64,000 nucleotides of DNA from Monocercomonoides exilis PA203 (taxonomy: Eukaryota; Protista; Preaxostyla): positions 620,001 through 684,000 of the forward strand of contig LSRY02000036.1 in the NCBI GenBank assembly GCA_001643675.2, written 5' to 3'. The notes beneath the pieces are model-generated. The model was given only the letters and a program-made list of their open reading frames with translations, was not told the origin of the DNA and did not search any database. Made by a program: the position numbers and the translations under genes. Positions 19,611 to 64,000 of the stretch are shown piece by piece. Every line of letters begins with the position of its first letter. Within the stretch, counting starts at the first letter, position 1.

Positions 19611-22600
19611 TCACAAGTATTTTCGGCTTTTCCTCCCTTCTTCTTTGCTTATCGATTCGCTCATCCCATCTTCTTCCTCTTCTTCCTCTTCCTCTTCGTC
19701 TCGCAAAGAATCGCAGATTGCATCTGTCAGTGTCACCATCACTGCCCCAGCTGGAAAGTGCCCAATCAGCTCTCGCTTCATCCCACTCAGAGAAGGCCTG
19801 TCTGCCTCATTCCACGAGATACACAGCCTCCAAAACTCCAAATATGGTGTGTCCTTCACCAGCCCCACATTCGGCATTTCTCCATTCGCAATCTTCTGCC
19901 CAGCTGCCTCTGCCTCATACTCCCCGAACGGGATCTGGAGCGTCAGGCACTCCCACAGCATCATCCCGACCGAGAATGCCACCGACTTCTCTGTTGCCCC
20001 CATCTTCTTGTTCATCTGCAGCTCTGGCGCCTTCCACCTCAGACACTCTTTCTTGAAATTGTCATCCTCATCCTCAAATGCAGACGAGGGCAGAGAGTCA
20101 TCCTCCTCCTCCTCCTCATCACTGGCAGATGTCGCAACAGTTGACGAGGAGATGGATGAGGAATCGGAATCATCGTCAGATGAGAAGTCGGAGTGCATCA
20201 CGATGCAGATGACCATGTGCTCAGAGAATAGCACAATGTGTGGGCTCAGATTGGCAAGTGACTGAAGAGGGTTGTCCATCTCGGAAAATGAGTGGAGGGC
20301 GAGATTGGCCACCCAGAACAAGACCTGGGCAGCTGTTTGCTCTCTTTCCTGCAAAGTGCCTATCGCCATCTCCTTCTTCTCATTCCTCCCATGAAGCAGC
20401 ATGAACAGCGAATCCCTCAGATCCACAATCAATTTCTCATGAGGTGATGAGCAGGCCATTGCATCCACCAGATTCGACATCGATGAGGTGGTTGGACACA
20501 AATCCTCCCCACGAACAAAGGTGGATTCTGTATCTGAAGTGTCTGTGGTTGAAGCGGATGAAATGGATGGTGATGGAGTTCGCTTCCTTGAAACATCATC
20601 TTTTTCTTCCTCAACCTTTTCTAATGCCCATTCAGGAATCTTGTCTGAATCTCTGCCCAGGATGTATTCAGTCGATCCGCTCTCAGACAGAAGATGCTCT
20701 GATGACTCCGAGTGTCCCAAGCTCTTCGCATACACCCTCTTCTTGATCCTTTCCTCATTTTTCTTCTCTGCTTCCCTTTCTGCTCTCCTCCACTGCTCCT
20801 CAGGAGACATCTCCATCGTCACCATCTCAAATGCCTTTGGATCTTTTCTGATGTTATCATTCACAATCTCTCTCAGATCTTCTGCTTCATTCTTCACCTT
20901 CTTCCATCGAACAATGAATATCACAGAAATAATCAGAACAATCAACAATATCACAACAAGCACAACAACAATCAACAACCAATACGATTTCCCTTCTTTT
21001 CCTCCTTCAACAATCCTTTCATCCCCATTTGCCTTGGGATCACTTCTGTTCTTCAGAATGAAAGAATCAGTTGCAGACAACCGCTTTCCATACACAATCA
21101 TCACAGACACCTCCGTCTCATCTGGGATCGACGAAAGATTTCTCGAAGGCACCATCCCAACTGCTTCCGTTTCGCTCACAAACCCATCTTCTGCAAAATG
21201 ATATGTCTCAATCAGGTCTGTATCTCCAGCTGACAAAATCAGTCGGAATGACAAATCGCATGGCAGAAGAAGTGCTCCCTTGAATTGAATTTCAGTCCCA
21301 CATCCATTTTCGCTGGCCGAAGCCTCTTCCAGCTTGGGAACGAAGAAGGGCGATTCACTTTCTCCTGCTATCCCTTCCAGGCTGCATCCATCATCCAGAA
21401 TCCACAGCGAAGAATTGGGCATCACCCCATCTCCTCCCTTCAAACTGGAAATGGTCAGCGAAGCAGAATCTGAACAGATGATATTTCGACGAAGTGATGG
21501 ATATTTCTGAATAAATGGATTGGTATTATCAAATCTTCCATCTTTGATGTTCATAGCACCTCCATATAAGGTTATTCCTCCCTTTGAGGAGTTGCTGATT
21601 GTTGTGTCTCTCACAACAGCTGAACTGCTCGAGAAATCAATTACAGACCCATTCCATCTGCAAATTTCATCCATTTCATTATTTGTCTTTTCGAAATTAC
21701 CAATGAGATTTCCCACAAACACACACGAGTCAAGAAATATTTTGTTTGCATTTGCCACTGACACTTGGCTTCCTTTTTGCAACTCTGATGTGCATTCACG
21801 AAAAGAGCAGTTCAGCATCTCAAAGTCGGTCATTGGTTGAGTTGTGCAAATAATGCAGGATCCAGATGATGTTTTGATGATGTTTGAGAATGATGATTGC
21901 ATCAATGAAAAAACAAGTGAAGAGTTGATTGCTTCGAATGAGATGAGGCTTCTATCTTGCAAAGAGATATTTGTGGCTGACAACTTCGAAATTCCCACAT
22001 TTTCACACTTTCCACATTCAAACATTGAACTCTTGCATTCCACATCGCTGACTGACAAATCTTCAAATGTTGCTCTTTCTGAACTCAAAATCTGGAATAC
22101 AGGTTTTGAGAATATCAAATGTCCAACACCACATCGATCTGCTTCAAACAGCCCATCTTCAACAACAACAAGAGAACAATCAAAAAGGATCTGTGAATTC
22201 TCCTCTGATCTGTTCTCTATCAGGAATGAAACAGATTCGAGAATAAGAGACCCACTCAGTTGGTGCATCAAACACGAGCAGCCAATATTCCCCGTTCCTT
22301 CAAAAACAAATTTCACTCTCTCCAATCGAGCAAACTCCGAAGTTTTCACAACTCCCTCACCTCCCAAATTTATCTCCCAGATTTTTATCTCAGCATTTCT
22401 GTTCGCTTCCATCGACTTGATCGTCACACTCTCAGCTGAGCACGAACCAGTTAATCTGGTTTCATTCCAGACATACAGCTGCGAATAATCCGATGGGATG
22501 ATGTGGCTCACCCCAACATTCAGCGATGAACATGCTCCCTTCATTTCCCCACAGTTCTTGCCGTCGCTGTTGTTTCCCAGAATCGAAGATACAAATATGA

Positions 22601-25600
22601 ATTCACTCCTGAACACAAACACTCTCCTCAGCAGATCCTCTTCATCTCCATAATTGTCTGCTGCGCATCCCCATATCGCCAGCTCCTTCACAAATGGCTC
22701 TCCAAAGTTGATCAGGAACTGCCACTCCGAAATCTGAGTGTCAAGGTCAGTGCACTTCACAAACACATCTCTCCCCTTCGATGCAACATTCCCTTGGAAT
22801 GTGATGTTCGACAGCACAAATGGCAATGCCTTCTGTGAGACACTCTGCGATTTCAAAAACAGTCCTCCGCCTCTCCCAATATTCGAACAGAAACAGTCTG
22901 TCACGTTTGTGTGATTCATCTCCAAACTCCCCTTCTCATCGAGAAGGAAAAACACCCCTCCTCCTTCATTCGAACTTGCTGATCCACAGCCATCAATTGT
23001 TGAGTTCTCCATTTTCAATCTCACTTCCTTTGACACATCACAACAAAGCATCGAAGGGTTGTTTGACACGCTGTGCTTCACATTCATAAATGTGCATTTG
23101 TCAAACAGAATATTCCACACTTCTTCTGCATTTTCATTTCCACTTGAAGAGACCACACTTTCTCTCATCACAATTGCACTTTTCCCACTCAAAAAAATAT
23201 CTTCAAAGTTCACATCGCTCATGGTTGTCACACAATCAGTTGATATGCTCATTATCTCATGAATCGTTGAGAATCCAGTTATTTCTGTCTTTTCAATCGA
23301 AACAATTCCTTTTGATGCACTTATCAGCACAAATGCTAATTCACCTTCAGCATCATCTTTCATGTGAATTGAGCAACGCACAACACTCGTTTTGATTGCA
23401 TCGAAGCCCGACTGGATGAGAATGCTTGCCTCATTGTCAAAGACAGTCGGAATCAGAATCCCCACTTCTTTGAACTGAACAACTCCTCTGCACTCAACAA
23501 CAACATTCCCATTTCCTTCAATCTCTTTCACAAATTGGATTTTGTCTGATTCTCCATCTGTTCCTTCCAGCATCACCCCACTCACACTCATTTCACTCCT
23601 CACATCACAAGTCCCCTGAACAACAATCGATTCAATCTCTGAGTCACTCCCTCGCTTCACCCCATAATCAACCGATCCACATGGATACTCCAACAGTCCA
23701 CACACAACCACATTGTTTCCTCCTCTTGCAACAAGCACACTCGTTCCAATCTCTTTCCAGAAATAGATCAGTGGGATTGCACATTCCTTGTTTCCCCCAT
23801 CAAACCCTCTCATCGAGTCTTCTGTCAATATCTCCAGTCTATCTTTCACAAATGGCAGTGTTTCGTTCTTGATGCTGCTGATAAGCGATGGAGATGAAAC
23901 AAACAAGTCCTTTCCAAACTTCGCATTGTTCGGCTTATCGGATGAAAAAGTTGGAGAGGATATCACAAAATCTGTCTCACCCATTTCACTCAACAAGTTC
24001 AACATTATTCCTCCTCCATATCCAACACTTCCCTCTCCATATGGTGCTGTGCAACAATAAAACTTACACCCACTCACCACAAGACTCGTTTTTGAAAATG
24101 CCTCACAAAAGAGTGCACCTCCTCCTATCTCATTTCCTTTTCCTTCAACAGCACATCCTTCGAATGAACAGTCATTTATTTCCACTTTGAAATCTCTTCC
24201 ATCATTATCATCCTTATTGTTCGAAACACTTACACATCCTCCACTTCCCTGTGAGCGAACAATCGATGAAAATGTGCATCCTGACATCTCATGGATATTT
24301 CCATTGTGACACTCAACAACACATCCATCCCCAAACGTGATTTCTCCAAAATCACTTTTCGTCATATTCATCGAAGACACACTTTCAGCATTCCCTTCAA
24401 CAACGAATAACGATGAACCCCACTTGGCACCTCTTTCACATCCAAAACCAATCACTTCCACAATCCCTCCAACAGCCTTCACAAACACGGTCGAAATAGC
24501 CTCTGCGCCTCCCTCCATCCCGCATTTGCTCAGTGTGAGCTTCCCCAAACAACACTCAAACACACTTTCATGAAAGGTCAGCGATCTCTTCAAAGAAAAG
24601 ATAATACCAGTCATTGACACAGGCACTGCATTTGCAATAAATCCACTTTGAGCTCCCTCCTTCTGATCAGAAACATCACACTTCACATTTTCCATTTTTC
24701 CTTTGATGCTCCATTCATTCGAAGTCAAACTCAGTTCTTCCTCAAAGACAAATGGCTCAAGAAGTGCAACATCCTTTTTCTTCCCTTCAAAATGGACTGA
24801 TGCTGCCTTGGAGATTGTGCAGCATGGAAACTCTTCGAATCCACACTTCGAAAAATCATGGCTCAACGATCCTCCTCCAACAAATCCACATCCTGAAAAA
24901 TTATTCCACAAATACAATACCAGCGGAATGGCAAATGCTTCGTTCAATGAGGATCTCTCAAATCCATTCAATTTTGTCAAGTTATTCAAATCAACTCCAA
25001 ATCCAATTGAGCTTCTGTCAATCACACTCCAAAGATCATTTGCATTGATAAAGATTTCTTTCCCTTCTCTCGCATCACATCCAGAAAACAATACCTCCTT
25101 CAAGATGAATGAGCTTGCTTCATCATCCAAATGAAGATAAATCCCTCCTCCATATCCACACTCTCCACCTGCTGTTTGCATCGCCTTGCAATTAGTGAGC
25201 CCGAACAAATCGTTTTCATCATTTAAAGATGTTGTTTTTGCTGAGTCTGCCTCTGTCAGGTTTCCCACAGTGAATGATGATCCTTCTTTCATCTCAACCC
25301 ACAACCCTCCTCCGTTTCCTCCATTAATCTCACACTCTCTCATCATCCCTCCGACTATTTCCAGTGAGCAATCTCTCCCAAGTGTGCATTCAATTGCCCC
25401 TCCATTTCCTTCAATTCCTTTGAATCCACTTATCGTGTTGTTTGTGAGCTTCAGAAACTTGGAGGAATTTGTGGAAATTACTCGAATAGATCCTGACTGC
25501 AAATCTGTTTGTAAAGATGCTTTCACTGAAAGTGTTGAATCTTTAATCGAAAAAGATGCTCCATTCTCCACTCCAAACAAAACACTATTTGTTGTCGAGC

Positions 25601-28600
25601 TAATATCCTCAATATTCATGGAAGTGAATGTTCCTGCAGCATTGCTTTCATCAAGATTAATCAGCGGATAGTTCCCAATAGTCAAGTGCAACACAACAAA
25701 CGATGATACAGAGACCTCTCCTGCTGTTGTTGACAAAAATACATAAGATAACGCTGATTGGGAGCCTTGAAATGTCAGTGAGCAATCTTCAAGCGAAAAT
25801 GATTGTGAGGTGGAACTGAAGAATATTTCATGATTTGGAAGAGCAGAAGGAATGGAGAAAATCAATGTTCTCAAATTCGTATTAGTGTTGACTGTTATCA
25901 TGCCTTCTCCACTTCCATCACATTCATCAATCACCTTCCATCCGCTGTTTTCATCATTCCCCTGGATTGTGTGCTTGAAGGAGTCGAATGTCAGCTCCTC
26001 TTCCATTGCAATCATCCCATCAACAACAATCTTCTTTTCCTCTTCTTGCCTTGTCAGCGAATGTTTCAGAGTCAGACAGGGAAACTCAGCATATCCACAA
26101 TGGGAGTGATCAAATGCATCAACATTGCTTGCAACAACCTCTTCTGGCAAAGAAATCAGATACACACACAGCGGTATTGGAATCGTTTCATCTCCATTGT
26201 GGAATCCCCGAATTTTGTTTATTGTGGAATTTGAAGCAGTTAATGAAGTGATCTTCCCACTTGTTGCAGTCGTCCCCAGATCGATCGAGTCAACAAAAAT
26301 ATCACTTCCCCATTTCGCCCTGTTCCCTTCAAATGCTGATGAAATCAGAAATTCTGCACTTGTATCTTTCACTTTCAGCCCAATCCCTCCTCCTCTCCCT
26401 TGAGTGGTCGAGGCATAACAGTTCTTCACAAACCCTCCATTCATCGTCAATGAGCCAATATTCCCCACTTCAATCATTATTCCCCCTCCAAAAACAGAAT
26501 CTTCACTTCCACAGCCATCAATTGTACATCCTTCAAGTGTTATCGAAAATGACCCTTCACCTGAACTTATCAACGATGATCCAGCTGTTGTCCTCACAAT
26601 GTTGCTAAATGTGCAGTTATCCAGAGAGAATGAAACTGACGATCCTTGAGAAAGAGATATCGCACTTGTGGTACTGAATGTTTGCAACCATCTCACATCT
26701 TTCATTTTCAACTCTCCACCATCAACTTTCACAAGTGAGTTTTGAATGCTCCTCTCTTCTGAATGAGCTGCATCCATCGAAATGTTCATTCTCTTCACAT
26801 CCATCAATCCTCTTCCCTGAATCTCAAATAATCTACTTCTTCGATTATTTTCAACTGACGAGTTGTGAACAACTGACAGATCGCTCACAGTCAATTCCCC
26901 TGTTCCAATACAAAATAGACTCAGTCCACTTCCCTCAAATTTTGTTTCAATGGCAGAGCCAGATGGGGAAACTCCACTCAAAGAGATCGTTTTCTCTCCA
27001 ATGTCAACTCCTTTTCCTTCCACAACTGTTCCACTCAACACCTTCATTTCCTCCACAAACCCTACGATCAATTGTGAAAGGCAATGGCTGATTGTTAGAC
27101 AGGCATAACTCTCATTCAATCCACAGCTATATGTATCTTTCGCTTTGGATTGAGTCAATTTGGAGGAGACAAATCTGCATTTCCCACCATTGTTTGGCAA
27201 CCATTCACTTTTATCGCCTCCAGCATAATATCTATTTTCATCTATTCGCGATGAAAAGCACCAAAAAGCTTGAGATTTATTATCATAACTTAAAATAACC
27301 ACATCATTTCCAAATGAGGCACTATTGTTGTGAAAATAACAAAAGTAAAGAAAATTCCCAATTTTTTCATTTAGGGAAATGCAGCAACCGCCTCCCATAT
27401 ATTCGCAAAGGCAATTTAAAAAAAGGCAGTTTTTCAATACTATTTTTTCGTTAACACCACAATCATATCCACCACCTCCTCCATTTTTTGAGCTGTGAGC
27501 GCTGCAATTTTTAAACGAACAATCCAAAATACAATCTTCTGTATTTATTGTTTTTGTACTGTAAATTCCAACTCCCCCTCCATCATTCCCTGACCAGCAA
27601 TCTTCGAACAAACAATTTTCCAAATATGGCTGAATACATATTCCTGATATCTCAACTCCAGCTCCTCCCCAATCTGTCGATGAAGCACAGAAGCACTCTT
27701 CAAACACAGAATGCTTCACAGTGCATTCTCCAATATTCAGAACATAAATGCCTCCACCTCTTGTGGATGTTGCTTTGCATTTCACAAAAGATGAATTCTC
27801 CACAGTGAGCGTTGCGTTTGGATTATCATGAACATACAGTGCTCCACCGCAATCAGCAGAACATTCAATCCACTCTGCATTTTTGAATGTCTGTGTTTCT
27901 GTTGTTGGCAGTCTATCTGTATTCCTAATTCTCCAATCTCTTCTTTCGTTGCGATGAAATGTGCAATTGCTGCACAAAAACACTCCCGATCCCTGTGTTC
28001 CACTCGCTATCCCTCCTTTAAGCACATTCATTGAGCTCATCACAATGCTATCTTCCATGTGGCTTTCAGTGATTGAGTCTTCACTTTTCATCTTTTCATC
28101 GGCTTTGTTCATCTCAGTCACATTCGCAAAAGTGCATTTTTTCACAACTTCGCTGAATCCTTCCCCATTCCTCAAAATGCTCCCTTTCCCACAAAACGCA
28201 ATGTTCCTCCACTCACAGTTTTCTATCTGCACACACGAACTTGCTTTTTGCATCTCCACAACACTATTCGACAAGGAATAACAAGAGCTGCTCATCAGCG
28301 ATGAATTCCTCAAAATACAAAACCCCCAATTGCAAATCGTCGAAGACGAAAGATTCCCTTTTTCAGTCAGCAGGCAACATCCAAAACTCAGCGCAGATTG
28401 CTCCCCAACAAAAAACGAACACTTTTCTCTTGATCGATAAATGCAAACATTCTCCACTCCCATTGAAGAGTTGTGCATGCTGCACATTGTCTTCACAATG
28501 CATTCTTCGTTTCTGTTTTGTCTTCCTTCAAGCATCCCCATCCAGCATTGGAGTTGTTCCTCATTCTGGTCAGGTAGTTGACATCTTCCCCATGCACCAA

Positions 28601-28634: not shown

Positions 28635-29172
28635 TTTTCAGCCAAAATAATTGATAGATCATCCATCCATAATCCATCTTTTCGGTTCTGCACTATTATT
28701 TTTAAAGACACAAAAAGACTTAACAGCATTTATTCTCATATTTTTATTTCCATGTTACAACTTTTCCCCGCATTTTTGAATCTAATTGGCTTTGGAACAA
28801 ACTTTTCAAAATATGTCAATCCAAACAGAAGCATTCAAAAGGATAATAAAAGAAATCTCTGACCATACTTCTGAAACTTAATTACTGCTGTTGCTTTGAG
28901 AGCAATTTTCTTTCCGAGTGAACCCTGTTCTGCAAATGAAATTTTTTATCATTTATTTTTTCTCTGAATTTTTCAAAAATGTGCTTCTTGAATTTTTTCT
29001 TTTGGAAAATGACGCAACAAAATCATGGAAAAATAATAATGAAATAAAAAATGAAAATATAAAATAAAATCAAAAATAATATTTTTAATTCAAAATTTAT
29101 AATATTAAAGGTGAAAAGAAAAGAGATAAACTGGATCAATCCACAAAAAACAAAAATAACAACTCAGAAAAG

Positions 29173-32100
29173 ATGAATTCAAACTTCTTTCAAGCTCCTA
29201 AAAATCAGCATACTTTGCGTATTCTTGCTCATGATTCAACTCCACCCAAGCGCCTTATCTTTATTTTTGAAAATGGCAGCAATCTATTTTGCCATCCAAG
29301 CGAGATCAGCAAATTGCAGGCTATCCTCTCCTTTGATTCCGCAAAGGCAAAGGCACATGAAACATCGAAACGGAATAAATGCATGCAGCAGCACCGATAG
29401 AAATAAATAAAGAAAATCAATCATCATCGAAAAAATCAACAAGGGCCTTCGCTTTTGAAGAACGGAGAACAATTTTCATCTTTGATTGAAACAAGCACAT
29501 TCACAACAGAGCGAACGGAGTTTGCCATTTGAAAGAAATTGGCGCAATAGCTCATTTTGTTCGATATGTTGAGGCTTTCGCTTTGATCAGCTCGCTCTTT
29601 TAGCTTCAATTCGCAGTTTTTGATTAAATTTTTTGTGAACAACGCCCTTCATGGTACGTCCAAAAACATTTTTGGCACTGCTTTCTCCTTAGCATATAAA
29701 ATTAATGATGCGCTAAATAAAATAATTGCCACAAGAAATTCGAATCTCAACTCGAATAAACACAAAAAATACAAACTATCGGAATATCATGTTGTGCGTT
29801 TTTCTTAATCCAGCAAAAGCACACTTCCCGGAATGCAGCAAATATATGTCATATGAATCTTTGATCGTTTGAACGCTTTTGCTGCTCTGGACAGTTTTTG
29901 AGGGAAATTCTGTTTTTCATTCATCAGAAATATATGTTGGGCGAAAGATTTGATTTAAAATCGTTTTTTGTGTTAAGATGGAATGACTGGTGGATGAATA
30001 AGAGTCACGCATATACAAATAATTTTTTCGAATGCTTCAAGCTCGTGGTGGTGTGAATGGGATTGATTTGCTCAGTTGAGCGCGAATATGCATATTTCAC
30101 TTTCAAATTGAAATGAGGCATCCAAATCTTCGGTATCTCTGCAAACACTGTAAAGGACATAACGGATCTTTATATGTAGAAGCTGGTCACTTTGTTTTTG
30201 AGCGAGTTGATTTGGGGCTGAATTGATGGTGATTTATTTTCAAAGAATGACGAAAATTGACAGATACATACTTGCGCGAAGCTAAATCGCCTGAACCAAT
30301 GAGCATTATTGAGCGCACATCGGAGATAAAAACAATTTTGTTTGTTCATTCGTCATTTCATTTATATTAAATAAGTATTTTTTATTTTTTGAAACATTCA
30401 ACTTTAGCAGATCAATCCTTATCTTTCATGCTTGAATTTACAGCCCTGCGCGCATCTTTCTCAGGATTCACAAACGCCACAGCTATGCATCTATTTGCCA
30501 TCTGCGTTCCTGGTTGATGCATTTCGGGAATCACAAATTTTTGTTTTCAACAAAACCATTCAAATGACTTTAAATGAATCTCAACTGATTTATTTTCCAC
30601 TCCCAAAAGACGATTTGGAGCAGTCAAGGTGAAAATCTGCTGCACAAAAATTTGTGTTATTGAATCGAAATGCTTCATTAATTGAAATGGAAACAATCTG
30701 GAAGACAAATTGAAGAGCCAGAATTTGCCTTTGTCAAAAAATACAGGATGCGAAGTCAGCTTGGAATGCAGAGCGACTTTTCTTCTGAAATTGAAGGTTT
30801 CACAACGAAGCAGTTTGTTCAGGCTGCGAAGCAGGATCTTCTGAGATTTCCGCTTTTGATGCGCATTGTTTCTTCTCTCAGCCAGGAGCCTTTTCCTTTC
30901 GAGAGAAAGAAGCCATCACAAGAGCAGCCAGAAAAGTGCCTCTCGCTTCACCTCGCTAGCATTGTTCAATCATTTTGGCTTTCCAGATGTTGCAATGTTA
31001 AGTTCATTTCATTGGATTGGGAACAGAATAATTAGAAATTTCTTGAAAATGCTTCATTCAATTTCATCTGAGACTTCACATTTGATTTTCGCTGCGACGG
31101 AATACAAATACTTTTGGGCTGTTGTAAGTGCAGTAAACAAGCACTTTTATGAGGCCAAGAATTTCAGCGTATGCAGCAGGGCTGTTCAGAGGAAGAAGAT
31201 GGCAGAGAAACAGGGAATAGTGCTGCTGGCCTTTGTTGGAGATGCATCAATGGGAAAAGAAATACTGAAGATGATCAACACATCACTTGCTTCACACTCA
31301 GAAGAGCATCTGATAAGGAAATGGATTTTGGAATCGAAGTGAAGAAATGATAACCGAAGAAAGATGAAGAGAGATCGAAAAAGAGAATTCCAATTCTTTG
31401 AAAGATTACAAAAAGTTGTTGGATGAGGAAGAATTGAGCAATGCGGATGGCTCTATTATTGCTGCATGGTCAACAAAAACTGAAAACGTCTTTTTTGATA
31501 AAATCATCGCCTCGTGCAAATCCTAGAGCATGGTGTTGCTCATTTTTAGTTTTATTTGAGCAGCTGGGGAACATCTCTGGCTCAAGCAGAGAAAGATGGA
31601 TTTAGTAGCTTCTGCGGATTGTTTGAGCGCAATATCAGTTGGATTTTCTCTTTTGTTTGAAACTATTTTATTCTTAACCAAAGCGGAATCAGTGTTTTTG
31701 CAAAGTTGCATCATATATTTTTTGGCAAGTGGGAGTTATTGCAGCAGAATTTTCAGGATTGGTCAGAGAGAAGTTGAAGTATTTTGGTCGACTTTTTTCG
31801 AAACCAGTTCATGTTGCGTTCGATTTTCCTCTTCGCAAAGATTGCTGATATAATTTATTGAATTCATTGCAGCATTTGACTCAACATAAAGTGCAATAGA
31901 TTGGCTTTCACCAATGTGTTGCGCTTTCCATTTTAATTGGCCGTTAAATGCTGAGGAACGAATGAAATGCTTTTGAAAAAAAGAATGTGAGGAAAGGCAA
32001 AAGCATTGGACCAGAAGTGGCCTTGCCAGAAATGAGTGAAGGAAGAAGAACGCGATTGATTGATGATTCAAAAAGATGATCTTTGAAGAGATTGTTCATA

Positions 32101-32700
32101 TCAAATTTGCAAATATGAATGAGGCGTTTCTTTATCTTTGACAAGCCACGAGCAATTCAACGTTGTTTTTGTTGCATCAGTTTGTTCTTTGGATAAGCTG
32201 GAAGAAATCAGCAAGGCTGAAACAAAAAAGAAGAAAACCTCTTGTTCTTTGCACTTATTGCGATTCTTGGAAAAGAGAACACGAGAAAGGAAAAAAGAAG
32301 AGAAGAGAGTGAAAAAATAGGAAGAGGATTTATCGAACAAAAGTGAATTCGAATCAGTGATTGTTTTGAAGCTGAGGAAAGGTTTGCAAACAAAATAGCT
32401 TGTTTGACTTTTTTTTTCACGAGCTCTTCTTTTATTTTTATTTTATTTTGTTATTTCTCTCAATTTTTAAATTGTTTCTGGAAACAGAAAAGAGGTCACT
32501 CGAATAACTCTTGTTGATAGGCATGTGACATTTGAAGGCTCCAATGAAAGAAACATCCACAACTGATTGTTTCAGATTTCTTGCTATCTTTTGGATTTTT
32601 ATCGAATGTTTTCTGTGCAACAAGAATGAAGCCAATCGACAAAATGAGCAATGAACCGCTAATCTGGTAGATGCAAGGTCTAATCATTTATTTGCAACAA
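29173..32700. pseudogene. Probable decayed coding relics between the two receptor genes
   Basis: Visibly higher GC than flanking intergenic DNA and many short, overlapping, protein-like ORF fragments on both strands. No consistent splicing model and no recognisable family. Confidence 0.3.
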
Positions 32701-33231
32701 ACATTACAAAAGAAGCAAAATGAACATAAAAGGAGAAGAAATTGCCAATTGAAAAGCTTTTAATCTTCTTTGGCTGTTCCGTGATTTTCCTTGTGAAAAA
32801 TCATTTACTAATACTTTCATTTTTTGTTGCATACTGGATGTTTTATTGAAGAAATGCAGAAATCATCAATTGCTTATTTGCTCTGGGGGAAAAAAAAGAA
32901 AAAAGAATCGAATGAATAAGGAAAGAAATGCTTAAAAAGAACAAAAAGTGAATGCACAGCAGCAGAAAATGTTGCTGATAACACTTATTTGATGAACAAT
33001 TGTGTGAAGTGCATGACATTTCTGGATTAAAGAATGTGAAAGCACAACCGGTTTGAATTTCAATTTCTTGAATCTCATTTTCTTATCACCATTTTTTCTG
33101 ATTGGTTTTGTTATTTTCGTTCTTTCATCAATTTCTATTCAGCTCCATGGTGTGTTTTTTGCATTGATTGCGAATTTGCGAAAAGACGAATGAGCAACTG
33201 AATCTGAGGTTCTCCTTTTCAACTCTTTGAT

Positions 33232-36200
33232 TCATCTGTCAGTTTCATCTGTGAAATAGCTTTCTTCGTGGTGTGAGTCTTCGATATAGATCACTGCATC
33301 AGACATTGTGAGCATCACTTTCCCTTCTGGAAACCGCTGGATAAACTCTCTCTTCAGTGTTTGAAGAGAAAGACGTTTTTCAGACTCAGATGACAAGCAC
33401 AGCATAATTATGGATTCTAACGTTGACTCTTCTGTTGCCTTCAAATTAGGCCTCTCCCCATTCGCAATCTTCTGCCCAGCTGCCTCTGCCTCATACTCCC
33501 CAAACGGGATCTGGAGCGTCAGGCACTCCCACAGCATCATCCCGACCGAGAATGCCACCGACTTCTCTGTTGCCCCCATCTTCTTGTTCATCTGCAGCTC
33601 TGGCGCCTTCCACCTCAGACACTCTTTCTTGAAATTGTCATCCTCATCCTCAAATGCAGACGAGGGCAGAGAGTCATCCTCCTCCTCCTCCTCATCACTG
33701 GCAGATGTCGCAACAGTTGACGAGGAGATGGATGAGGAATCGGAATCATCGTCAGATGAGAAGTCGGAGTGCATCACGATGCAGATGACCATGTGCTCAG
33801 AGAATAGCACAATGTGTGGGCTCAGATTGGCAAGTGACTGAAGAGGGTTGTCCATCTCGGAAAATGAGTGGAGGGCGAGATTGGCCACCCAGAACAAGAC
33901 CTGGGCAGCTGTTTGCTCTCTTTCCTGCAAAGTGCCTATCGCCATCTCCTTCTTCTCATTCCTCCCATGAAGCAGCATGAACAGCGAATCCCTCAGATCC
34001 ACAATCAATTTCTCATGAGGTGATGAGCAGGCCATTGCATCCACCAGATTCGACATCGATGAGGTGGTTGGACACAAATCCTCCCCACGAACAAAGGTGG
34101 ATTCTGTATCTGAAGTGTCTGTGGTTGAAGCGGATGAAATGGATGGTGATGGAGTTCGCTTCCTTGAAACATCATCTTTTTCTTCCTCAACCTTTTCTAA
34201 TGCCCATTCAGGAATCTTGTCTGAATCTCTGCCCAGGATGTATTCAGTCGATCCGCTCTCAGACAGAAGATGCTCTGATGACTCCGAGTGTCCCAAGCTC
34301 TTCGCATACACCCTCTTCTTGATCCTTTCCTCATTTTTCTTCTCTGCTTCCCTTTCTGCTCTCCTCCACTGCTCCTCAGGAGACATCTCCATCGTCACCA
34401 TCTCAAATGCCTTTGGATCTTTTCTGATGTTATCATTCACAATCTCTCTCAGATCTTCTGCTTCATTCTTCACCTTCTTCCATCGAACAATGAATATCAC
34501 AGAAATAATCAGAACAATCAACAATATCACAACAAGCACAACAACAATCAACAACCAATACGATTTCCCTTCTTTTCCTCCTTCAACAATCCTTTCATCC
34601 CCATTTGCCTTGGGATCACTTCTGTTCTTCAGAATGAAAGAATCAGTTGCAGACAACCGCTTTCCATACACAATCATCACAGACACCTCCGTCTCATCTG
34701 GGATCGACGAAAGATTTCTCGAAGGCACCATCCCAACTGCTTCCGTTTCGCTCACAAACCCATCTTCTGCAAAATGATATGTCTCAATCAGGTCTGTATC
34801 TCCAGCTGACAAAATCAGTCGGAATGACAAATCGCATGGCAGAAGAAGTGCTCCCTTGAATTGAATTTCAGTCCCACCTCCATTTTCGCTGGCCGAAGCC
34901 CCTTCCAGCTTGGGAATGAAGAAGGGCGATTCCCTTTCTCCTGCTATCCCTTCCAGGCTGCATCCATCATCCAGAATCCACAGCGAAGAATTGGGCATCA
35001 CCCCATCTCCTCCCTTCAAACTGGAAATGGTCAGCGAAGCAGAATCCGAGCAGATAATGTTTCGACAAAGCGATGGATATTTTGCAATGAAAGGATTGTT
35101 GCCAAAGAATTCTCCTTTCTCTATCGTCACAGATCCTCCTCTCGCAGTCATCCCTCCCTTTGAGGAGTTGAAAATTGTTGTGTCTCTCACAACAGCTGAA
35201 CTGCTCGAAAAATCAATTACAGATCCATTCCATCTGCATATTTCCTCTATTCTGCCATTTTCAGAAGACTCCATTTTTCGATCTTCATCAACAACACCAA
35301 GGAAAATGCACAAATCAAAACACACATCAGAACAATTAACCACTGATACAATCGATCCTTTCTCCTTTTCGCTCAAGCATTTTCCAAATGAACAATTCGA
35401 AAGAACAACATTTTCCTCCAAATTCTGCATTTTCACAGCACTTCCACTTCTCAACAGCGTTATGTTCTGAGCATCAAGCTCCTTCATCTGCACTCTTGCC
35501 CTGCCACCAACTTCTATTGCATTTCCCTCTGATAATATATTAAGAATTTTGGTTTCTGATATAAAAGCTTTTGACTCACCAATGAATTCTATCAAAGGCA
35601 CTGATGTTTTCATTCTCACCATCTCGCACTTGTCCATCTCCAGTTCTCCACCTTCGACAGCCATTATTGAGTTTTTAATGAGATATCCAAATGATGAAGA
35701 TGAAAATTCGCATTCTCTCAACTCTGTTGTTCCGTTCTGCACTTTCAGAATGTGTCTGTGATTTGCTTCAAACATTTCTCCAAACTCAAATGCACATCTC
35801 TCTGCAACACACTCATTCACAAACACAATCACACTCCTTTCGTTTCCCATCTCTTGAATGGTTGCATTGAAATGGATTGTCGCCTTTGTCTTCTTCACTG
35901 ATTTCACGCACAAGTCTCCGATCACACATTCTCCACCAATGTCTCCTTCTCCATCAACAAAAATCATATTTGCAACACCTCTTTGAATGTGGCTCGCACT
36001 GCAGCTGATGCTTTTGCACGGATTTGTCTGTGCCCCGCACTGCCTGCTGTCTGTTCCTCCAACATTCGCAAACACCTGAACTGCAAAATAGAATGTGATC
36101 AATGGAATCAGATCAACATCTCCACCTCCACTCGCATCGCTCCCCCAAACAGAGTTGTTCAACTTCAGTGCTTCTTGGCTGAAGTCCAGTGAAAACAATG

Positions 36201-39200
36201 TTTCGTTGACCTGCGAATCAATCGAATTGCATCGGATGAACACATCCTTCCCCACGTGTGCATCATTCATCATGAATCGGATGTTCTCCATTATCAGCCC
36301 AAGTGGCGATGCTGGCATTTGATCTGGCACTCGATTTGGATCGAGTGCATCAATCATCATCCCTCCTCCCCTTCCATTGGCTGTCGAGCACACACACATC
36401 CCAAATGTGCATCCGCTCACTTTCAGCTCTGACTCTCCTCTCTTCAACAACACTCTCATCCCTCCTCCTTCCTCGCTCGTCTCGCTCATGCACTTTCTCA
36501 GCTCGCATCCTTCCACCACACACTCCACCCCAGCTGAGAACGATCCCACGCTCAACGCACATGCTCTGTTCTCTGTGCATGTGATGTTTGTGAATGAAGA
36601 GCCATTCACTCTCACTGTTTGCCTTGTGTTCACTCTTTCATTGCTGAGCAACACATTTGTTGGGGATGGCTGACTCAGCGATATCAGACTGCAACCAGAT
36701 ATGGTTGTGTTTGATATCGACACATTCACCACATCAACCATCATCACACCTTCTGTGAATTCCACAAACCCTTTTGCCAGACTGAACTGAGAAAGGGTAC
36801 AATCCTCAATTGCCACGCTCCCTCCATCTGCCTTCATCAAGCAATAATTTGTTTCCTTTGTTGCCTCCCCGCAAGCAAATGAGCAACAAAAAACAGAAAG
36901 GGCAGATGCTGTGGAGGAGAGTGAATGAATGAGCGAAGAGTGATGCAAAAGCTCGTTTGGCAGAGAAAAGGCAATTCTGGCAATGCTGAGGCTCACATTT
37001 GACTGAATCATCCCATCTTCGCTGCCATCTCCTTCTGTCACTTTTATTGTTGCTTTTCTCTCTTCGCCTTCAATCCACACACTCAGCCTCTCCGATAATG
37101 ACGATGATGACGATAACAACGAAATCGAGTTGCTGAGCTTCCCAGAATTTCTGATTGCTATTTTTGTTTCTTCTCTTCCAAGAGGCGAGCATCTCAATGA
37201 AACAAGATGATCAATTGATGAACATGGTGCTTCTGAGTTTCCGCACCCACTGAAGTCTCCTCCTCCATCTCCTGATACATATCCATTCCCACTCCAATTA
37301 TCCCACAAATACACTACCAGTGGAATCACATAAGTCTCTCCTGTGCTCGCTCTCTCCCATCCACACAACTCATCCAATGACCCCAACTCCTCATCACTCA
37401 TCTCCCATTTGAAGTTATCCTTATTCACAATCACACTGAGATCCCATCCCGAAACAAACAAATTTTTCCCTTTCCAGGCATTGCACCCAACAAATGTCAT
37501 GCTCTCCAATGAAAATATTTCAATCCTCTCATCCAAACTCACAAATATCCCTCCTCCAAATCCTTTTCCTCTTATTTCTTCCTCACTCGATGACACTTCA
37601 CAGTTTTTAAACTCTACCCCCTTCATCTTTATTCCGCCTCCACTTCCAACTGATATCATCATCCCTCCTCCTCTTCCATTTGAGTCTGTTTCATTCTCTG
37701 TCTTGCAACCATCAAATGTGGTTGACCCATTGATCACAACCTCTTCGTCTTTGCCAATTGAAATCTTCATTCCCCCACCACAACCATCTTTCTCCTCAAC
37801 ACCACACTCACTGAATGTGCTATTCGTGATTATTATAACATCAACAATATATGTGTCAGAATTCTTGCTTTCCTTTTTGGCGCAGCTCCTTTCCAAACAG
37901 CTTCCTCCTCCATTTCTCCTCGATATTCCAGTCAGAACACAATTTGAAAATTCTGCTGAACTTTCTCCACCACATCTGATTATTGGATCTGACAAGGTAT
38001 TTATTGATCCTTTGTTCGAGAAGCCTGTCATGTGCAGAACTCCTCCATCAATATGAAAGACACAGAATTCGATTTCATTCAGTGAGTTTTTGATGGCAGA
38101 TTCAATTGAGCAATCACTGACACTCAAAGCATTTGAAGAGGAAAGGATGAATGAAGAGGCTGGAGAAAGTGCTGATGGAAGCGAAAAGCACATATCTTTC
38201 AGCAATGCTGCCGATGAAATTTTGATCAAACATTTAGAGTCAAACTGAAGAGTAGGCGCAACAACCTCAACAGCAGTGTCTCCAATTGTGCCTGTCACAT
38301 TCCAAAACTGGCTCTCCATTACAACCTCTTCACAGAGCACAAATCCATTTTTGATTCGGATTGTTCTTGACACAGCCCCATACCACACCTCAACCACTCT
38401 CTTGATCGATGAGCACGGATACTGCTCCATTCCACATCTGCTGAAGTCCAAGCTTTTCTCTCCTCCAACAAATCCAACATCTCCTGCTTCCATCATAAAT
38501 GGAAGAAGTGGCGCACACTCCTCCCGGCACCTATCCTCAAATCCCAATAAGTCTCTATCTGACATGCCCTCATGCTCAAAGCCAAATGTGATGTGACTCA
38601 CAACATCTCTCAGACACTGTGCATTCACAAATATGTTGTTCCCTTTTTCTGCCTGGCAATTCTCAAAAGAAGCATAATGGATACAAAAGGCACTATTCTC
38701 ATCACACACATCCAAATAAATCGCTCCGCCAAACCCTCCAACTCCATTCGTATTTCCCAAGCAGCAACAATTGCTGAATGTAACATAATCAACATTCTCA
38801 TCAGCACTTTCGCTTGAGACATTCCCAATCTCCATTTGTGAGCCTTCATTGAGCTGAATCCACATCCCTCCTCCACATCCATCCTCGCACACACAATTCC
38901 TCATCATTCCTCCTGAGATGTTCATCTTCATCCCATTCACCAAATTCCCACAAATCACACTCCCATCTCCACTCATCCGAGAAATACCCTCAACCTCAAC
39001 ATCATTCATCTGAAAAAATAATGAGTGCTCTCCTCTGATCTCGAATACAGGAACGGATGAAAATGATATTTCACTGATCTCAACAGAGTCAAGAATGACA
39101 GATCCCATCTGAACGATCATTAGCGATGCTGATAATGCACAGCTTTCATCGTTTCTCAATGAAGTGATCACACACTCAACCAATTTCAACATCCCTTCTT

Positions 39201-41361
39201 CTACCAACACTTCCATCAGATGAGACGATGGATTCTCCATACAAATAAATTTGATTTTTCTGAAACTTCCCACTCCTGCTCCAATGGCTACCAACGATTC
39301 TCCATTTGGTGATCCATTATGAACAATCACTTGTGTTTTGTCTTTCCCCTCAAATGATACCTTCATTTTTCCAACATCTATTTTGTTTTCTTCATAATCC
39401 CCAACTTCAATTATCACTTCGTTGCTGCTTCCTTCTGCATCCAGCACACTCATTCCATATTCAATTGTTTTGCATCTCCTTCCATATTCATCTCCTGCCC
39501 TCACAAGCCCACAGGCCATGTGATCCAGTCCTTCCATTGAGTTCACAAACACTGGGTTGAAGAAGATCTTTGGAATCCAATTGTCGTATCCTGTTTCTCC
39601 TTTGACCACTCGATTGCTATTTGCACTTGTGCTTGAACGACAGTGTACAAACGATGTATCATTGATGTTTGTCCATCCCTGAACAACATAAACATCATGA
39701 CCCAGATTCATTGCAGTGTTATTCGAAAAAAAGCAAAACATAATCGGTGAATCATTGTCTCCTGTGGAATTTGACCAGCACATACCTCCTCCATTATACT
39801 CACTGTATCCACCACAAAGTGAACAATCAGATAAAATGGCAGTTCCATTTCTAAAAAATCCAACACTTCCTCCTCCACTATATTGAGTTGTGTTCTTTCT
39901 GCAACAAAAAAAGATGCTATTTTCAACAAGGCCCTGATTATCGTTGTGTTCAATCAATATCCCACCTCCAATATGTTTGGCTGAACTATTCGAGCAATTT
40001 GTGTTCTTCATTGAAAATGTTGAAACATAATAAAAGTCAATGCATCCTGACGAATCTTCTGCTGTGCAAGAATCAAAACTGGAAGATATAACATAGAGTT
40101 TTTTACCAGAAGATCTTGATGAAATAGCTCCTCCACACCAAGAGGAAAAGCATAAATAAAATTTGCACAAAGTTACGTTCAAAAAACCCGAAGAAGTGAA
40201 AAGTATTGCACCTCCATTAACTCTTGATGAATTGCCAGTTGAAATGTTCTTGAAATCGCAATCCACAAATGTTGCATCACCAGAGCTGATTGTTTGCCTT
40301 GTCATATTTTTGCTTCCAATTACAGGATCGACATTTTCTCTCCGAACACATTGAGAATAACTCGAATTCCAAGCCAAGAAATGCTTATATTCTGAACGCA
40401 TCCCTTCGATCAATCCTCCGCCAAGTGGAGAATCCACTTTCTCGACAACGCATCCAGCAAAAGAGTAATCATTTTTTGAATTGCCTATTGAACATTGATT
40501 ATTTTGGATTCTTGCACTTTGTGAGATATTCGAAAAATGGCAGTTGAAAACTGATATTTTCCAAATGTTTGCGCTTGCCAAAAGAGAAGTTGATCTTCCA
40601 AGAGAAAATGAAGAAAAAGCGGAATCAATTATTTTCAAGTCTTTTTTCTTAAATTCAGAACTTATTTTTTCACATCCAACAAATGATTGACAAATTTCTG
40701 CACATTCGGTACTGAAATAAGAAGTGTTGCTCAGAATCAAATACCCTTCATTTAATGTGAATAAATAATCGCTTGATGCTCCTCTTTGATGGATTGAACA
40801 ACAATGAACAAGAACTGTGGATAAATCGTTGATGAACATGAGAGATCTTCTCTCTTCTTTGAAAAAGGACAAATATTTCATTTCACAACTCGAATTGCCA
40901 AAATTGACCATCGCTATCATTATGGATCTTTGATTGTTAAAAACTCTTTTTGAATCACCAATTGTCTTCAGCTGACAATTCTCAAACACCAAATGATTGT
41001 CCATATTCTTTAATTCACTTCTTTTATCTTTTGATAAATATCCTCTCTGTTTTTGCATCAACCCTGGTGCTTCAGCATCATTATTAGGGATTTTGCCTTC
41101 ATTCGCTTTATTATTTGCACATGAGCCATGAAAATTTAATCCATCAAGAATTTCATATGAGTGGTCGTAGAATAATCCTTGATTCAAAATATGAGCATTT
41201 TGAGAATCGATAGCGCATTTTAAGTTAATGTGTTCACATTTGTCAACAATCTCAAAGCTGCTTAACAATGCAAGCAAAGAAGACAAAAGTACAAAATTCA
41301 TCTTGAATATAAATATGGGTAATAATTTTTCTTCAAAAGATGAATATCTGGGAAATAACAT
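33232..41361 (-). CDS. Giant type I membrane protein (2709 aa), paralogue of 19611-28634; likely start at 41301 (MNFVLLSSLLALLSS signal peptide)
   Basis: Uninterrupted ORF with four DxxxCG..C modules and GGAI/GGG motifs. The TM and pseudokinase region match the upstream paralogue; the ectodomain is divergent. Confidence 0.85.
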   Translation of the reverse strand: MLFPRYSSFEEKLLPIFIFKMNFVLLSSLLALLSSFEIVDKCEHINLKCAIDSQNAHILNQGLFYDHSYEILDGLNFHGSCANNKANEGKIPNNDAEAPGLMQKQRGYLSKDKRSELKNMDNHLVFENCQLKTIGDSKRVFNNQRSIMIAMVNFGNSSCEMKYLSFFKEERRSLMFINDLSTVLVHCCSIHQRGASSDYLFTLNEGYLILSNTSYFSTECAEICQSFVGCEKISSEFKKKDLKIIDSAFSSFSLGRSTSLLASANIWKISVFNCHFSNISQSARIQNNQCSIGNSKNDYSFAGCVVEKVDSPLGGGLIEGMRSEYKHFLAWNSSYSQCVRRENVDPVIGSKNMTRQTISSGDATFVDCDFKNISTGNSSRVNGGAILFTSSGFLNVTLCKFYLCFSSWCGGAISSRSSGKKLYVISSSFDSCTAEDSSGCIDFYYVSTFSMKNTNCSNSSAKHIGGGILIEHNDNQGLVENSIFFCCRKNTTQYSGGGSVGFFRNGTAILSDCSLCGGYSEYNGGGMCWSNSTGDNDSPIMFCFFSNNTAMNLGHDVYVVQGWTNINDTSFVHCRSSTSANSNRVVKGETGYDNWIPKIFFNPVFVNSMEGLDHMACGLVRAGDEYGRRCKTIEYGMSVLDAEGSSNEVIIEVGDYEENKIDVGKMKVSFEGKDKTQVIVHNGSPNGESLVAIGAGVGSFRKIKFICMENPSSHLMEVLVEEGMLKLVECVITSLRNDESCALSASLMIVQMGSVILDSVEISEISFSSVPVFEIRGEHSLFFQMNDVEVEGISRMSGDGSVICGNLVNGMKMNISGGMMRNCVCEDGCGGGMWIQLNEGSQMEIGNVSSESADENVDYVTFSNCCCLGNTNGVGGFGGAIYLDVCDENSAFCIHYASFENCQAEKGNNIFVNAQCLRDVVSHITFGFEHEGMSDRDLLGFEDRCREECAPLLPFMMEAGDVGFVGGEKSLDFSRCGMEQYPCSSIKRVVEVWYGAVSRTIRIKNGFVLCEEVVMESQFWNVTGTIGDTAVEVVAPTLQFDSKCLIKISSAALLKDMCFSLPSALSPASSFILSSSNALSVSDCSIESAIKNSLNEIEFCVFHIDGGVLHMTGFSNKGSINTLSDPIIRCGGESSAEFSNCVLTGISRRNGGGSCLERSCAKKESKNSDTYIVDVIIITNSTFSECGVEEKDGCGGGMKISIGKDEEVVINGSTTFDGCKTENETDSNGRGGGMMISVGSGGGIKMKGVEFKNCEVSSSEEEIRGKGFGGGIFVSLDERIEIFSLESMTFVGCNAWKGKNLFVSGWDLSVIVNKDNFKWEMSDEELGSLDELCGWERASTGETYVIPLVVYLWDNWSGNGYVSGDGGGDFSGCGNSEAPCSSIDHLVSLRCSPLGREETKIAIRNSGKLSNSISLLSSSSSLSERLSVWIEGEERKATIKVTEGDGSEDGMIQSNVSLSIARIAFSLPNELLHHSSLIHSLSSTASALSVFCCSFACGEATKETNYCLMKADGGSVAIEDCTLSQFSLAKGFVEFTEGVMMVDVVNVSISNTTISGCSLISLSQPSPTNVLLSNERVNTRQTVRVNGSSFTNITCTENRACALSVGSFSAGVECVVEGCELRKCMSETSEEGGGMRVLLKRGESELKVSGCTFGMCVCSTANGRGGGMMIDALDPNRVPDQMPASPLGLIMENIRFMMNDAHVGKDVFIRCNSIDSQVNETLFSLDFSQEALKLNNSVWGSDASGGGDVDLIPLITFYFAVQVFANVGGTDSRQCGAQTNPCKSISCSASHIQRGVANMIFVDGEGDIGGECVIGDLCVKSVKKTKATIHFNATIQEMGNERSVIVFVNECVAERCAFEFGEMFEANHRHILKVQNGTTELRECEFSSSSFGYLIKNSIMAVEGGELEMDKCEMVRMKTSVPLIEFIGESKAFISETKILNILSEGNAIEVGGRARVQMKELDAQNITLLRSGSAVKMQNLEENVVLSNCSFGKCLSEKEKGSIVSVVNCSDVCFDLCIFLGVVDEDRKMESSENGRIEEICRWNGSVIDFSSSSAVVRDTTIFNSSKGGMTARGGSVTIEKGEFFGNNPFIAKYPSLCRNIICSDSASLTISSLKGGDGVMPNSSLWILDDGCSLEGIAGERESPFFIPKLEGASASENGGGTEIQFKGALLLPCDLSFRLILSAGDTDLIETYHFAEDGFVSETEAVGMVPSRNLSSIPDETEVSVMIVYGKRLSATDSFILKNRSDPKANGDERIVEGGKEGKSYWLLIVVVLVVILLIVLIISVIFIVRWKKVKNEAEDLREIVNDNIRKDPKAFEMVTMEMSPEEQWRRAEREAEKKNEERIKKRVYAKSLGHSESSEHLLSESGSTEYILGRDSDKIPEWALEKVEEEKDDVSRKRTPSPSISSASTTDTSDTESTFVRGEDLCPTTSSMSNLVDAMACSSPHEKLIVDLRDSLFMLLHGRNEKKEMAIGTLQEREQTAAQVLFWVANLALHSFSEMDNPLQSLANLSPHIVLFSEHMVICIVMHSDFSSDDDSDSSSISSSTVATSASDEEEEEDDSLPSSAFEDEDDNFKKECLRWKAPELQMNKKMGATEKSVAFSVGMMLWECLTLQIPFGEYEAEAAGQKIANGERPNLKATEESTLESIIMLCLSSESEKRLSLQTLKREFIQRFPEGKVMLTMSDAVIYIEDSHHEESYFTDETDR
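33458..34877. repeat. Near-identical direct repeat copy 2
   Basis: See copy 1 at 19882-21301. Confidence 0.9.
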
Positions 41362-63730: not shown

Positions 63731-64000
63731 AGGCTTTGTGAAATAAATCGATAAATGAAAATAGAATATATCAACTTAACGGAGAAAGTAGTAAAGATGA
63801 AGCTGCTTCAATCTATCGATTCGACTGAGTGCTTCAGAAACATATGCTTTGTTTGTTGAGAATTACTCCGTGAACATCAAAAGAAACAAATTTTTGTTTT
63901 TGATATTTAATTACGTGATGATCACATTTTTTGTTAATGAGAAAAAACAATACAAAAGAATGATAACAAAATGATATATGCATACATTTCTAGCTCTTTT

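Follow-up and report, generated by a model that had tools for sequence, protein, structure and literature searches.

In a window of 64,000 nucleotides (nt) from the genome of Monocercomonoides exilis PA203 (assembly GCA_001643675.2, 82,301,135 bases in 101 contigs; contig LSRY02000036.1, positions 620,001 to 684,000), we analyzed two giant receptor-like genes, A and B, which share an internal block of nearly identical DNA that is very probably the product of recent gene conversion. The window lies on a contig of 1.07 Mb, here called C32; coordinates are those of the window, and related genes elsewhere on the contig are named by their C32 position (e.g., C32:863000). Gene A (19611 to 28634) and gene B (33232 to 41361) are open reading frames (ORFs) of 3007 and 2709 amino acids (aa), as described in an initial annotation of the same DNA, and both are on the minus strand, as are all of the features within and next to them given below. 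The two have the same architecture, with a predicted beta-helix ectodomain, one membrane span, and a kinase-like tail. A hydropathy scan found a single strong hydrophobic span in A (20910 to 20978, aa 2553 to 2575), and the span of B (34486 to 34554) is identical to it.

The predicted fold of both ectodomains is a right-handed parallel beta-helix (pectin-lyase fold). The profile for right-handed beta-helix repeats (Pfam PF13229) matched the ectodomain of B at 36403 to 36846 with 28.6 bits against a cut-off of 25.9, and on A it reached only 10.5 bits. For A, we used an AlphaFold model of aa 2047 to 2557 built with 24 family sequences, which was all-beta (predicted local distance difference test score [pLDDT] = 83, predicted template modeling score = 0.80). 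A Foldseek search with this model returned phage tailspikes and polysaccharide lyases/glycosidases as the top matches (probability up to 1.0, template modeling scores of about 0.3), with a small immunoglobulin-like match besides. Look-alikes in the ESM Atlas were TIG, DUF1565, Chlam_PMP, and Beta_helix, whose scores of at most 0.88 make them leads only.

Across the 430 cytoplasmic residues, the match to a kinase is confined to the C-lobe, i.e., subdomains VIII to XI. Pfam PF07714 aligned through positions 162 to 258 of its 258 only, at 19767 to 20060 in A (27.1 bits) and at 33346 to 33636 in B (36.4 bits; cut-off, 23.1), and PDB profile matches to BTK, ILK, TAK1, and TNNI3K covered the same part of the C-lobe, beginning at the APE motif. 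This motif was present in 25 of 25 family tails, and the GxGxxG, VAIK-like, HRD, and DFG motifs were present in 0 of 25. Judging from these motifs, the tail of A and B is a kinase remnant or pseudokinase that is probably catalytically inactive. A similar situation is found in tyrosine kinase-like (TKL) pseudokinase scaffolds, among them integrin-linked kinase (PDB 3kmu and its relatives), where the match to subdomains VIII to XI of the C-lobe is likewise accompanied by missing catalytic motifs. The ratio of nonsynonymous to synonymous divergence (dN/dS) in the cytoplasmic part of the M. exilis genes is 0.10 to 0.14, which indicates purifying selection and therefore a function, presumably a noncatalytic one, as in those scaffolds. 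Unlike ILK, however, A and B have no N-lobe detectable by sequence in their cytoplasmic part, and a structure model of the tail from an alignment of 25 family sequences had a mean pLDDT of 45, too low for use.

A and B belong to the largest gene family of M. exilis. A search with the cytoplasmic part of A, in which 8000 candidates were scored, found at least 521 proteins (E ≤ 1e-5), and a first look at the DNA of the genome gave 1119 candidates. Among the matches listed, all 120 were MONOS_ proteins, 69 to 89% identical to A over its cytoplasmic part and mostly carrying PF07714, and the best protein matches mapped to C32; the exact A and B proteins had no record in public assemblies. This family has been published only as "protein tyrosine kinases, mostly tyrosine kinase-like," with 332 models in the first assembly and an overlap with the "unclassified repeats" that make up 35% of the assembly (PMC6759080, PMC8767320). 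Both genome papers give family counts and chromosomal distribution only (PMC6759080, PMC8767320), and we came across no description of the receptor architecture or of mosaic evolution in either of them. The terms "transmembrane" and "gene conversion" occur 0 times in PMC6759080, and we found no published description of conversion in this family.

Extent and edges of the shared block

An alignment of A and B by blastn consisted of a single match of 1810 nt at 97% identity. It contains a perfect tract of 1375 nt (19927 to 21301 in A and 33503 to 34877 in B, at a fixed offset of 13576 nt), which codes for the stalk next to the membrane, the span itself, the juxtamembrane helices, an insert rich in acidic residues and serine, and the kinase C-lobe as far as helix G. 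The tract is separated from a further perfect stretch at 19882 to 19925 by a single synonymous mismatch, at 19926, so that 1,419 of 1,420 positions agree over 19882 to 21301. In a codon alignment evaluated in 50-codon windows, third positions were 100% identical throughout the block, and synonymous divergence (dS) between A and B was 0 there. The ectodomain windows had 12 to 57% residue identity and 13 to 64% third-position identity; over the whole 5' (ectodomain) side of the block, the two proteins share 20 to 45% of their residues, and the third positions of their codons are 20 to 47% identical. On the 3' side, the tails (about 89 codons in A and 75 in B) have about 41 to 54% residue identity. 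Elsewhere in the 82-Mb genome, the closest copy of the block has 93% identity. The initial annotation had reported a block of about 1.42 kb, nearly identical down to its synonymous sites, lying between ectodomains with little common sequence and 75 to 90 final codons that diverge again, and all of this was borne out: sliding-window identity and dS show a homogenized block between diverged flanks. As for related sequences, copies of the block at ≥88% identity were all on C32 (at 342, 502, 520, 591, 695, 699, 805, 844, 874, 906, and 926 kb), and copies on other contigs were 79 to 83% identical; the C32 copies are a chromosome-specific subfamily.

On the upstream side, the identity had been described as fading gradually. 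Similarity does extend beyond the block, but what looked like a fade is a near-identical segment at 21302 to 21470 followed by the background similarity of the subfamily out to about 21650. This 5' extension of the tract contains two alleles found only in A and B (21369 and 21444) and four clustered A/B differences (21302, 21325, 21341, and 21357), all of them nonsynonymous (C/G, E/G, V/I, and S/R in A/B, respectively). The allele of A is private at three of these four sites and shared by one other copy at 21341; the patch is absent from every other copy in the genome, and thus no donor for it was found. The clustering of the four differences had a P value of about 8e-4 in simulation. They may have arisen by mutation in the course of repair synthesis, by patchy mismatch repair, from a donor since lost, or through selection on the stalk. 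Beyond 21470, the similarity between A and B is at the level of any C32 paralogue (91 to 97% to several of them), and by about 21650, A again resembles the 832500 and 863000 genes.

At the 3' edge, the last 45 nt before the tail of B diverges (19882 to 19926) contain only the A/B mismatch at 19926. Since all paralogues are about 96 to 98% alike over these 45 nt, the 3' end of the tract is placed at or before 19927. An alignment of 25 family sequences is rich in invariant columns up to the motif AGQKIxNGERP and hypervariable after it, and this switch falls within about three codons of the point at which A and B diverge. Copies on other contigs are likewise similar at the DNA level over about 19882 to 21075–21290. 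The 390 residues before the motif hold the invariant columns, and the last 80 to 90 residues after it are hypervariable in 25 of 25 sequences, with 28 to 46% residue identity between contigs. Profile alignments to BTK assign the hypervariable residues to kinase helices G to I, and this tail looks like a putative second variable module, one on the cytoplasmic side.

Ancestry of the two genes and of the block

We compared eleven related genes from C32 and found that A and B have separate ancestries. The whole ectodomain of A is 93 to 98% identical at the nucleotide level to those of the C32:863000 and C32:832500 genes. The upstream flank of A (28635 to 32533, 3.9 kb, with no ORF of >158 aa) matches the DNA upstream of the C32:863000 gene at 92% identity, so the duplication unit was much larger than the gene; it ends about 700 nt from the stop codon of B. 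Over its first 2 kb, this flank also matches the DNA flanking the C32:684001 gene, at 90% identity. The C-terminal tail of A (helices G to I region, 19611 to 19881) is of a type common to eight other C32 paralogues, to which the tail, along with some 350 nt of 3' flank, is 95 to 100% identical. With A and its 3.9 kb of upstream sequence being a 92% copy of the C32:863000 locus, we rejected the possibility that A and B are tandem duplicates of each other, in agreement with the initial annotation, which had held that a simple tandem duplication would not give the pattern observed.

Three lineages are combined in gene B, which is thus a mosaic. In its distal ectodomain, B is 82 to 85% identical to genes on contigs C18, C5, C31, and C49, and no further C32 copy was found among 16 candidates scored, which points to a probable inter-chromosomal exchange or relocation in the past. 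The subfamily defined by this region (37700 to 41300) has other members, at the same 82 to 85% nucleotide identity, on C25 and C36 as well. The proximal ectodomain of B (about 37500 to 35400) is 93 to 98% identical to that of the C32:331000 gene. Its C-terminal tail (33232 to 33457) is only about 60% identical at the nucleotide level to those of all C32 paralogues and has its nearest relatives on contig C9, to whose genes it aligned best (77 to 79%); B and the C9 genes are about 82% identical straight through core and tail, without a junction.

The block does not share the ancestry of its flanks. We aligned ten genes over 2.4 kb around the block and applied a GENECONV-type fragment test with 10,000 permutations. 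A and B were concordant at 250 consecutive polymorphic sites, while they differed at 358 of 788 sites overall; a run of 250 sites was reached in 0 of 10,000 permutations, which excludes chance. Between 21444 and 20351, there are 14 alleles private to A and B. Private alleles are absent between 20351 and 19927, but A and B have 0 differences from each other there, and any other paralogue has at least 9. Trees of the segments were incongruent among the C32 genes aligned. Upstream of the block (21800 to 21480), A grouped with 832500 and 863000 (support, 0.995), and the partner of B was 331000; within the block, the two genes were identical sisters, and in its 5' half the A-B pair grouped with 331000 (support, 0.948); in the tail, A was nested within the common C32 type and B was on a branch of length 1.13. 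Furthermore, dS between A and 863000 was about 0.11 as background and 0.38 across the replaced segment. The block dS of 0 between A and B compares with a background of 0.11 to 0.24 among close paralogues and with saturation between A and B themselves. These results argue strongly that the block is a recent ectopic (interlocus) gene-conversion tract, as the initial annotation had suggested, and we consider this reading highly probable.

The transfer was probably from B to A, a direction that we regard as only moderately secure. Between 21301 and 20950, the block has 13 differences from 331000 versus 29 to 30 from the relatives of A. Because 331000, with which this 5' half of the block was grouped in the tree, is the relative of the adjoining ectodomain of B, B would be native at the 5' edge and A the likely recipient. 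The block is itself an older patchwork, similar to 684001 in 20649 to 20352 and to 518277 and 863000 further 3'.

As to the mechanism, we infer that a non-reciprocal homologous repair event copied about 1.4 to 1.6 kb between A and B, which have the same orientation, are separated by 13.6 kb, and outside the tract are diverged members of the family. One of the two genes, probably A, would have suffered a double-strand break in its conserved core that was repaired with the core of its neighbor as the template, and copying would have been limited to the stretch where the two genes were alike. With such a limit, the tract would cover the segment that is conserved family-wide (stalk, membrane span, and cytoplasmic core), stopping near the start of the variable ectodomain and at or just before the hypervariable C-terminal tail; that the block is internal would thus be explained by the confinement of homology-dependent repair to the conserved core. 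Non-homologous end joining is reportedly missing in M. exilis, and homologous recombination is reported to be encoded by a fairly complete set of genes (PMC6759080). Given many hundreds of family copies and no end joining, ectopic templated repair would be the expected fate of breaks.

Perfect tracts and selection across the family

We scanned 13 C32 genes for perfect runs of ≥250 nt embedded in lower identity and found tracts comparable to the A/B block in several other pairs. The ectodomains of 832500 and 863000 share perfect tracts of 1,380, 880, 464, 403, and 359 nt, and those of 518277 and 684001 share one of 494 nt. Cores contain perfect tracts of 437, 272, and 265 nt, and A and 518277 share one of 301 nt in the tail and 3' untranslated region. 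The tracts sit at many positions, in ectodomains, cores, and tails, with no common junction among the 13 paralogues. The 832500 and 863000 genes are 96% identical overall, and the dS between them varies from 0 to 0.85 over their length, forming a second and denser conversion mosaic.

Compared with 17 genes on other contigs, the core had a dS of 0.65 to 1.04 and a dN of 0.12 to 0.18, with most ectodomains and tails being saturated; ectodomains that aligned well (58 to 64% residue identity) had a dS of about 0.9, equal to that of the core. This comparison suggests, without proving it, a family-wide homogenization of the core. The design of a variable ectodomain joined to a conserved core is real at the level of the family, with the core conserved family-wide at 73 to 89% residue identity and not constant. 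The dN/dS was below 1 throughout, at 0.37 to 0.48 in the ectodomain, and no window exceeded 1 significantly. The only windows in which the proportion of nonsynonymous differences was well above that of synonymous differences were at aa 2244 to 2343 of A (11.5 nonsynonymous versus 0.5 synonymous changes). Diversifying selection on the ectodomain was not supported, as these windows rest on too few changes and carry no formal test.

Alternative explanations and comparison with known systems

The assembly was built by Canu from nanopore reads (read N50, 8.9 kb) and then corrected by Nanopolish and ten rounds of Pilon (PMC8767320). In a family whose many hundreds of copies cross-map, consensus building or short-read polishing could have made two copies identical that truly differ. 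We therefore compared the region with Logan contigs of three DNA runs and one RNA-library run. Several observations weigh against a simple conversion of A by B or against the exactness of the identity. No Logan contig bridges the block, the repeat family having shattered the contigs into pieces of about 100 to 800 nt; a few real differences may have been lost over the ten rounds of Pilon, and thus "100%" may be slightly overstated; the four clustered nonsynonymous differences at 21302 to 21357 are not explained by one clean tract; and in 20351 to 20140, the relatives of A, with 7 to 8 differences, are closer to the block than is 331000, the relative of B, with 32. Differences erased by Pilon would alter the estimate of age and not the interpretation. 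That the identity as a whole is an artefact is very improbable. A collapse is unlikely with a read N50 of 8.9 kb and a block of 1.4 kb that has copy-specific flanks, polishing is unable to turn 93% into 100% with sharp edges, and neither the fourteen alleles private to A and B nor the comparable tracts in other gene pairs fit such an origin. Moreover, an RNA contig at 21272 to 21399, from a 2024 library of a separate study, matches A exactly, independently joining its private four-difference patch to the first 30 nt of the block, and a second contig of this library, at 21448 to 22093, corresponds to the A-specific ectodomain with one difference. The sequence of A around the 5' junction is supported by the RNA contigs, which also suggest transcription of this gene, with DNA carry-over in the library being possible.

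The strong constraint on the cytoplasmic core (dN/dS of 0.10 to 0.14) could be taken to mean that no exchange occurred and that an ancient duplicate was kept identical by extreme purifying selection. We give this explanation almost no chance, since synonymous sites are identical too, forming a block with a dS of 0 inside saturated flanks; equally constrained paralogues differ from the block by 7 to 9%, with a dS of about 0.2 there; and the trees are incongruent. The initial annotation had proposed a candidate diversifying receptor system with a constant signaling module. In its full form, this would be a programmed system in which ectodomains are swapped onto a dedicated core cassette under regulated (e.g., mutually exclusive) expression. 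Such a system would accord with the huge archive of family members (at least 521 proteins and 1119 DNA candidates), with modules of differing ancestry within one gene, with a core dS of about 0.65 to 1.0 where most ectodomains and tails are saturated, and with tract edges near module limits. However, the core is not constant, tracts also occur outside the core and share no common junction, and A and B are complete, full-length genes with their own flanks, neither of them a silent donor or an expression site. In addition, the ectodomain dN/dS of 0.37 to 0.48 gives no support for diversifying selection, well-aligned ectodomains have a core-like dS of about 0.9, and edges at the limits of the conserved core are what repair limited by homology would predict by itself. 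We found no indication of a dedicated mechanism of diversification and regard a programmed system as improbable. A milder idea, that the conserved stalk/membrane-span/dead-kinase core is a selected, family-wide recombination handle that lets ectodomains and tails pair anew, is somewhat less improbable and still doubtful; if it were true, the handle would give a commensal gut protist, which must repair every break by homology, a combinatorial repertoire of surface receptors.

The var genes of Plasmodium falciparum have a variable exon 1 and a conserved cytoplasmic exon 2, recombine ectopically among paralogues, and are under demonstrated mutually exclusive expression and immune selection. A and B are var-like in having a variable ectodomain, a conserved membrane-span/cytoplasmic segment, and mosaic genes. 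They are unlike var in that exclusive expression and immune selection are features shown for var and not for A and B, whose ectodomain dN/dS is as given above. Interlocus conversion in a membrane-protein family of an anaerobic mucosal protist has been described for the transmembrane adenylyl cyclases of Trichomonas, in which the conserved domains have indirect signs of preferential conversion (PMC2914791), and in the Gal/GalNAc lectin genes of Entamoeba, patches of one paralogue overwrite others in a large membrane-protein family (PMC3125142), as we observed here. In both cases, as in ours, detection was by GENECONV-type tests and mosaic ancestry. In contrast to those genes, the M. exilis genes encode beta-helix receptors of 2,700 to 3,000 aa with a dead kinase remnant, are present in many hundreds of copies, and belong to a commensal oxymonad.

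Taken singly, the event is an ordinary conversion tract of a multigene family. As an example it is clean and datable, with 0 differences in 1,375 nt versus about 5% divergence between the parent duplicates, and the family to which it belongs accounts for a large part of the "unclassified repeats" that fill a third of the M. exilis genome. Because core dS is capped at about 0.8, the ectodomains and the helices G to I tail are far more variable, and end joining is lacking, our results suggest that homology-only repair shapes the largest gene family of this genome. The wider pattern merits study at the level of the family.

Also in the window, on the plus strand at 60994 to 63736, is a degenerate fragment of a distant family member that contains part of an ectodomain, a membrane span, and a juxtamembrane region, with a frame break near 63060 to 63071 and with the 2.7 kb that follow free of any kinase part. 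The initial annotation had named this pseudogene as a possible by-product or donor. We rejected it as the donor, as it has 33 to 42% residue identity and only two short DNA matches with the block. Elsewhere on C32, two pairs of family members are inverted and nearly identical: 684001 and 697389, at 99.94% over 8,014 nt, and 904150 and 914500, at 99.5% over 5,582 nt.

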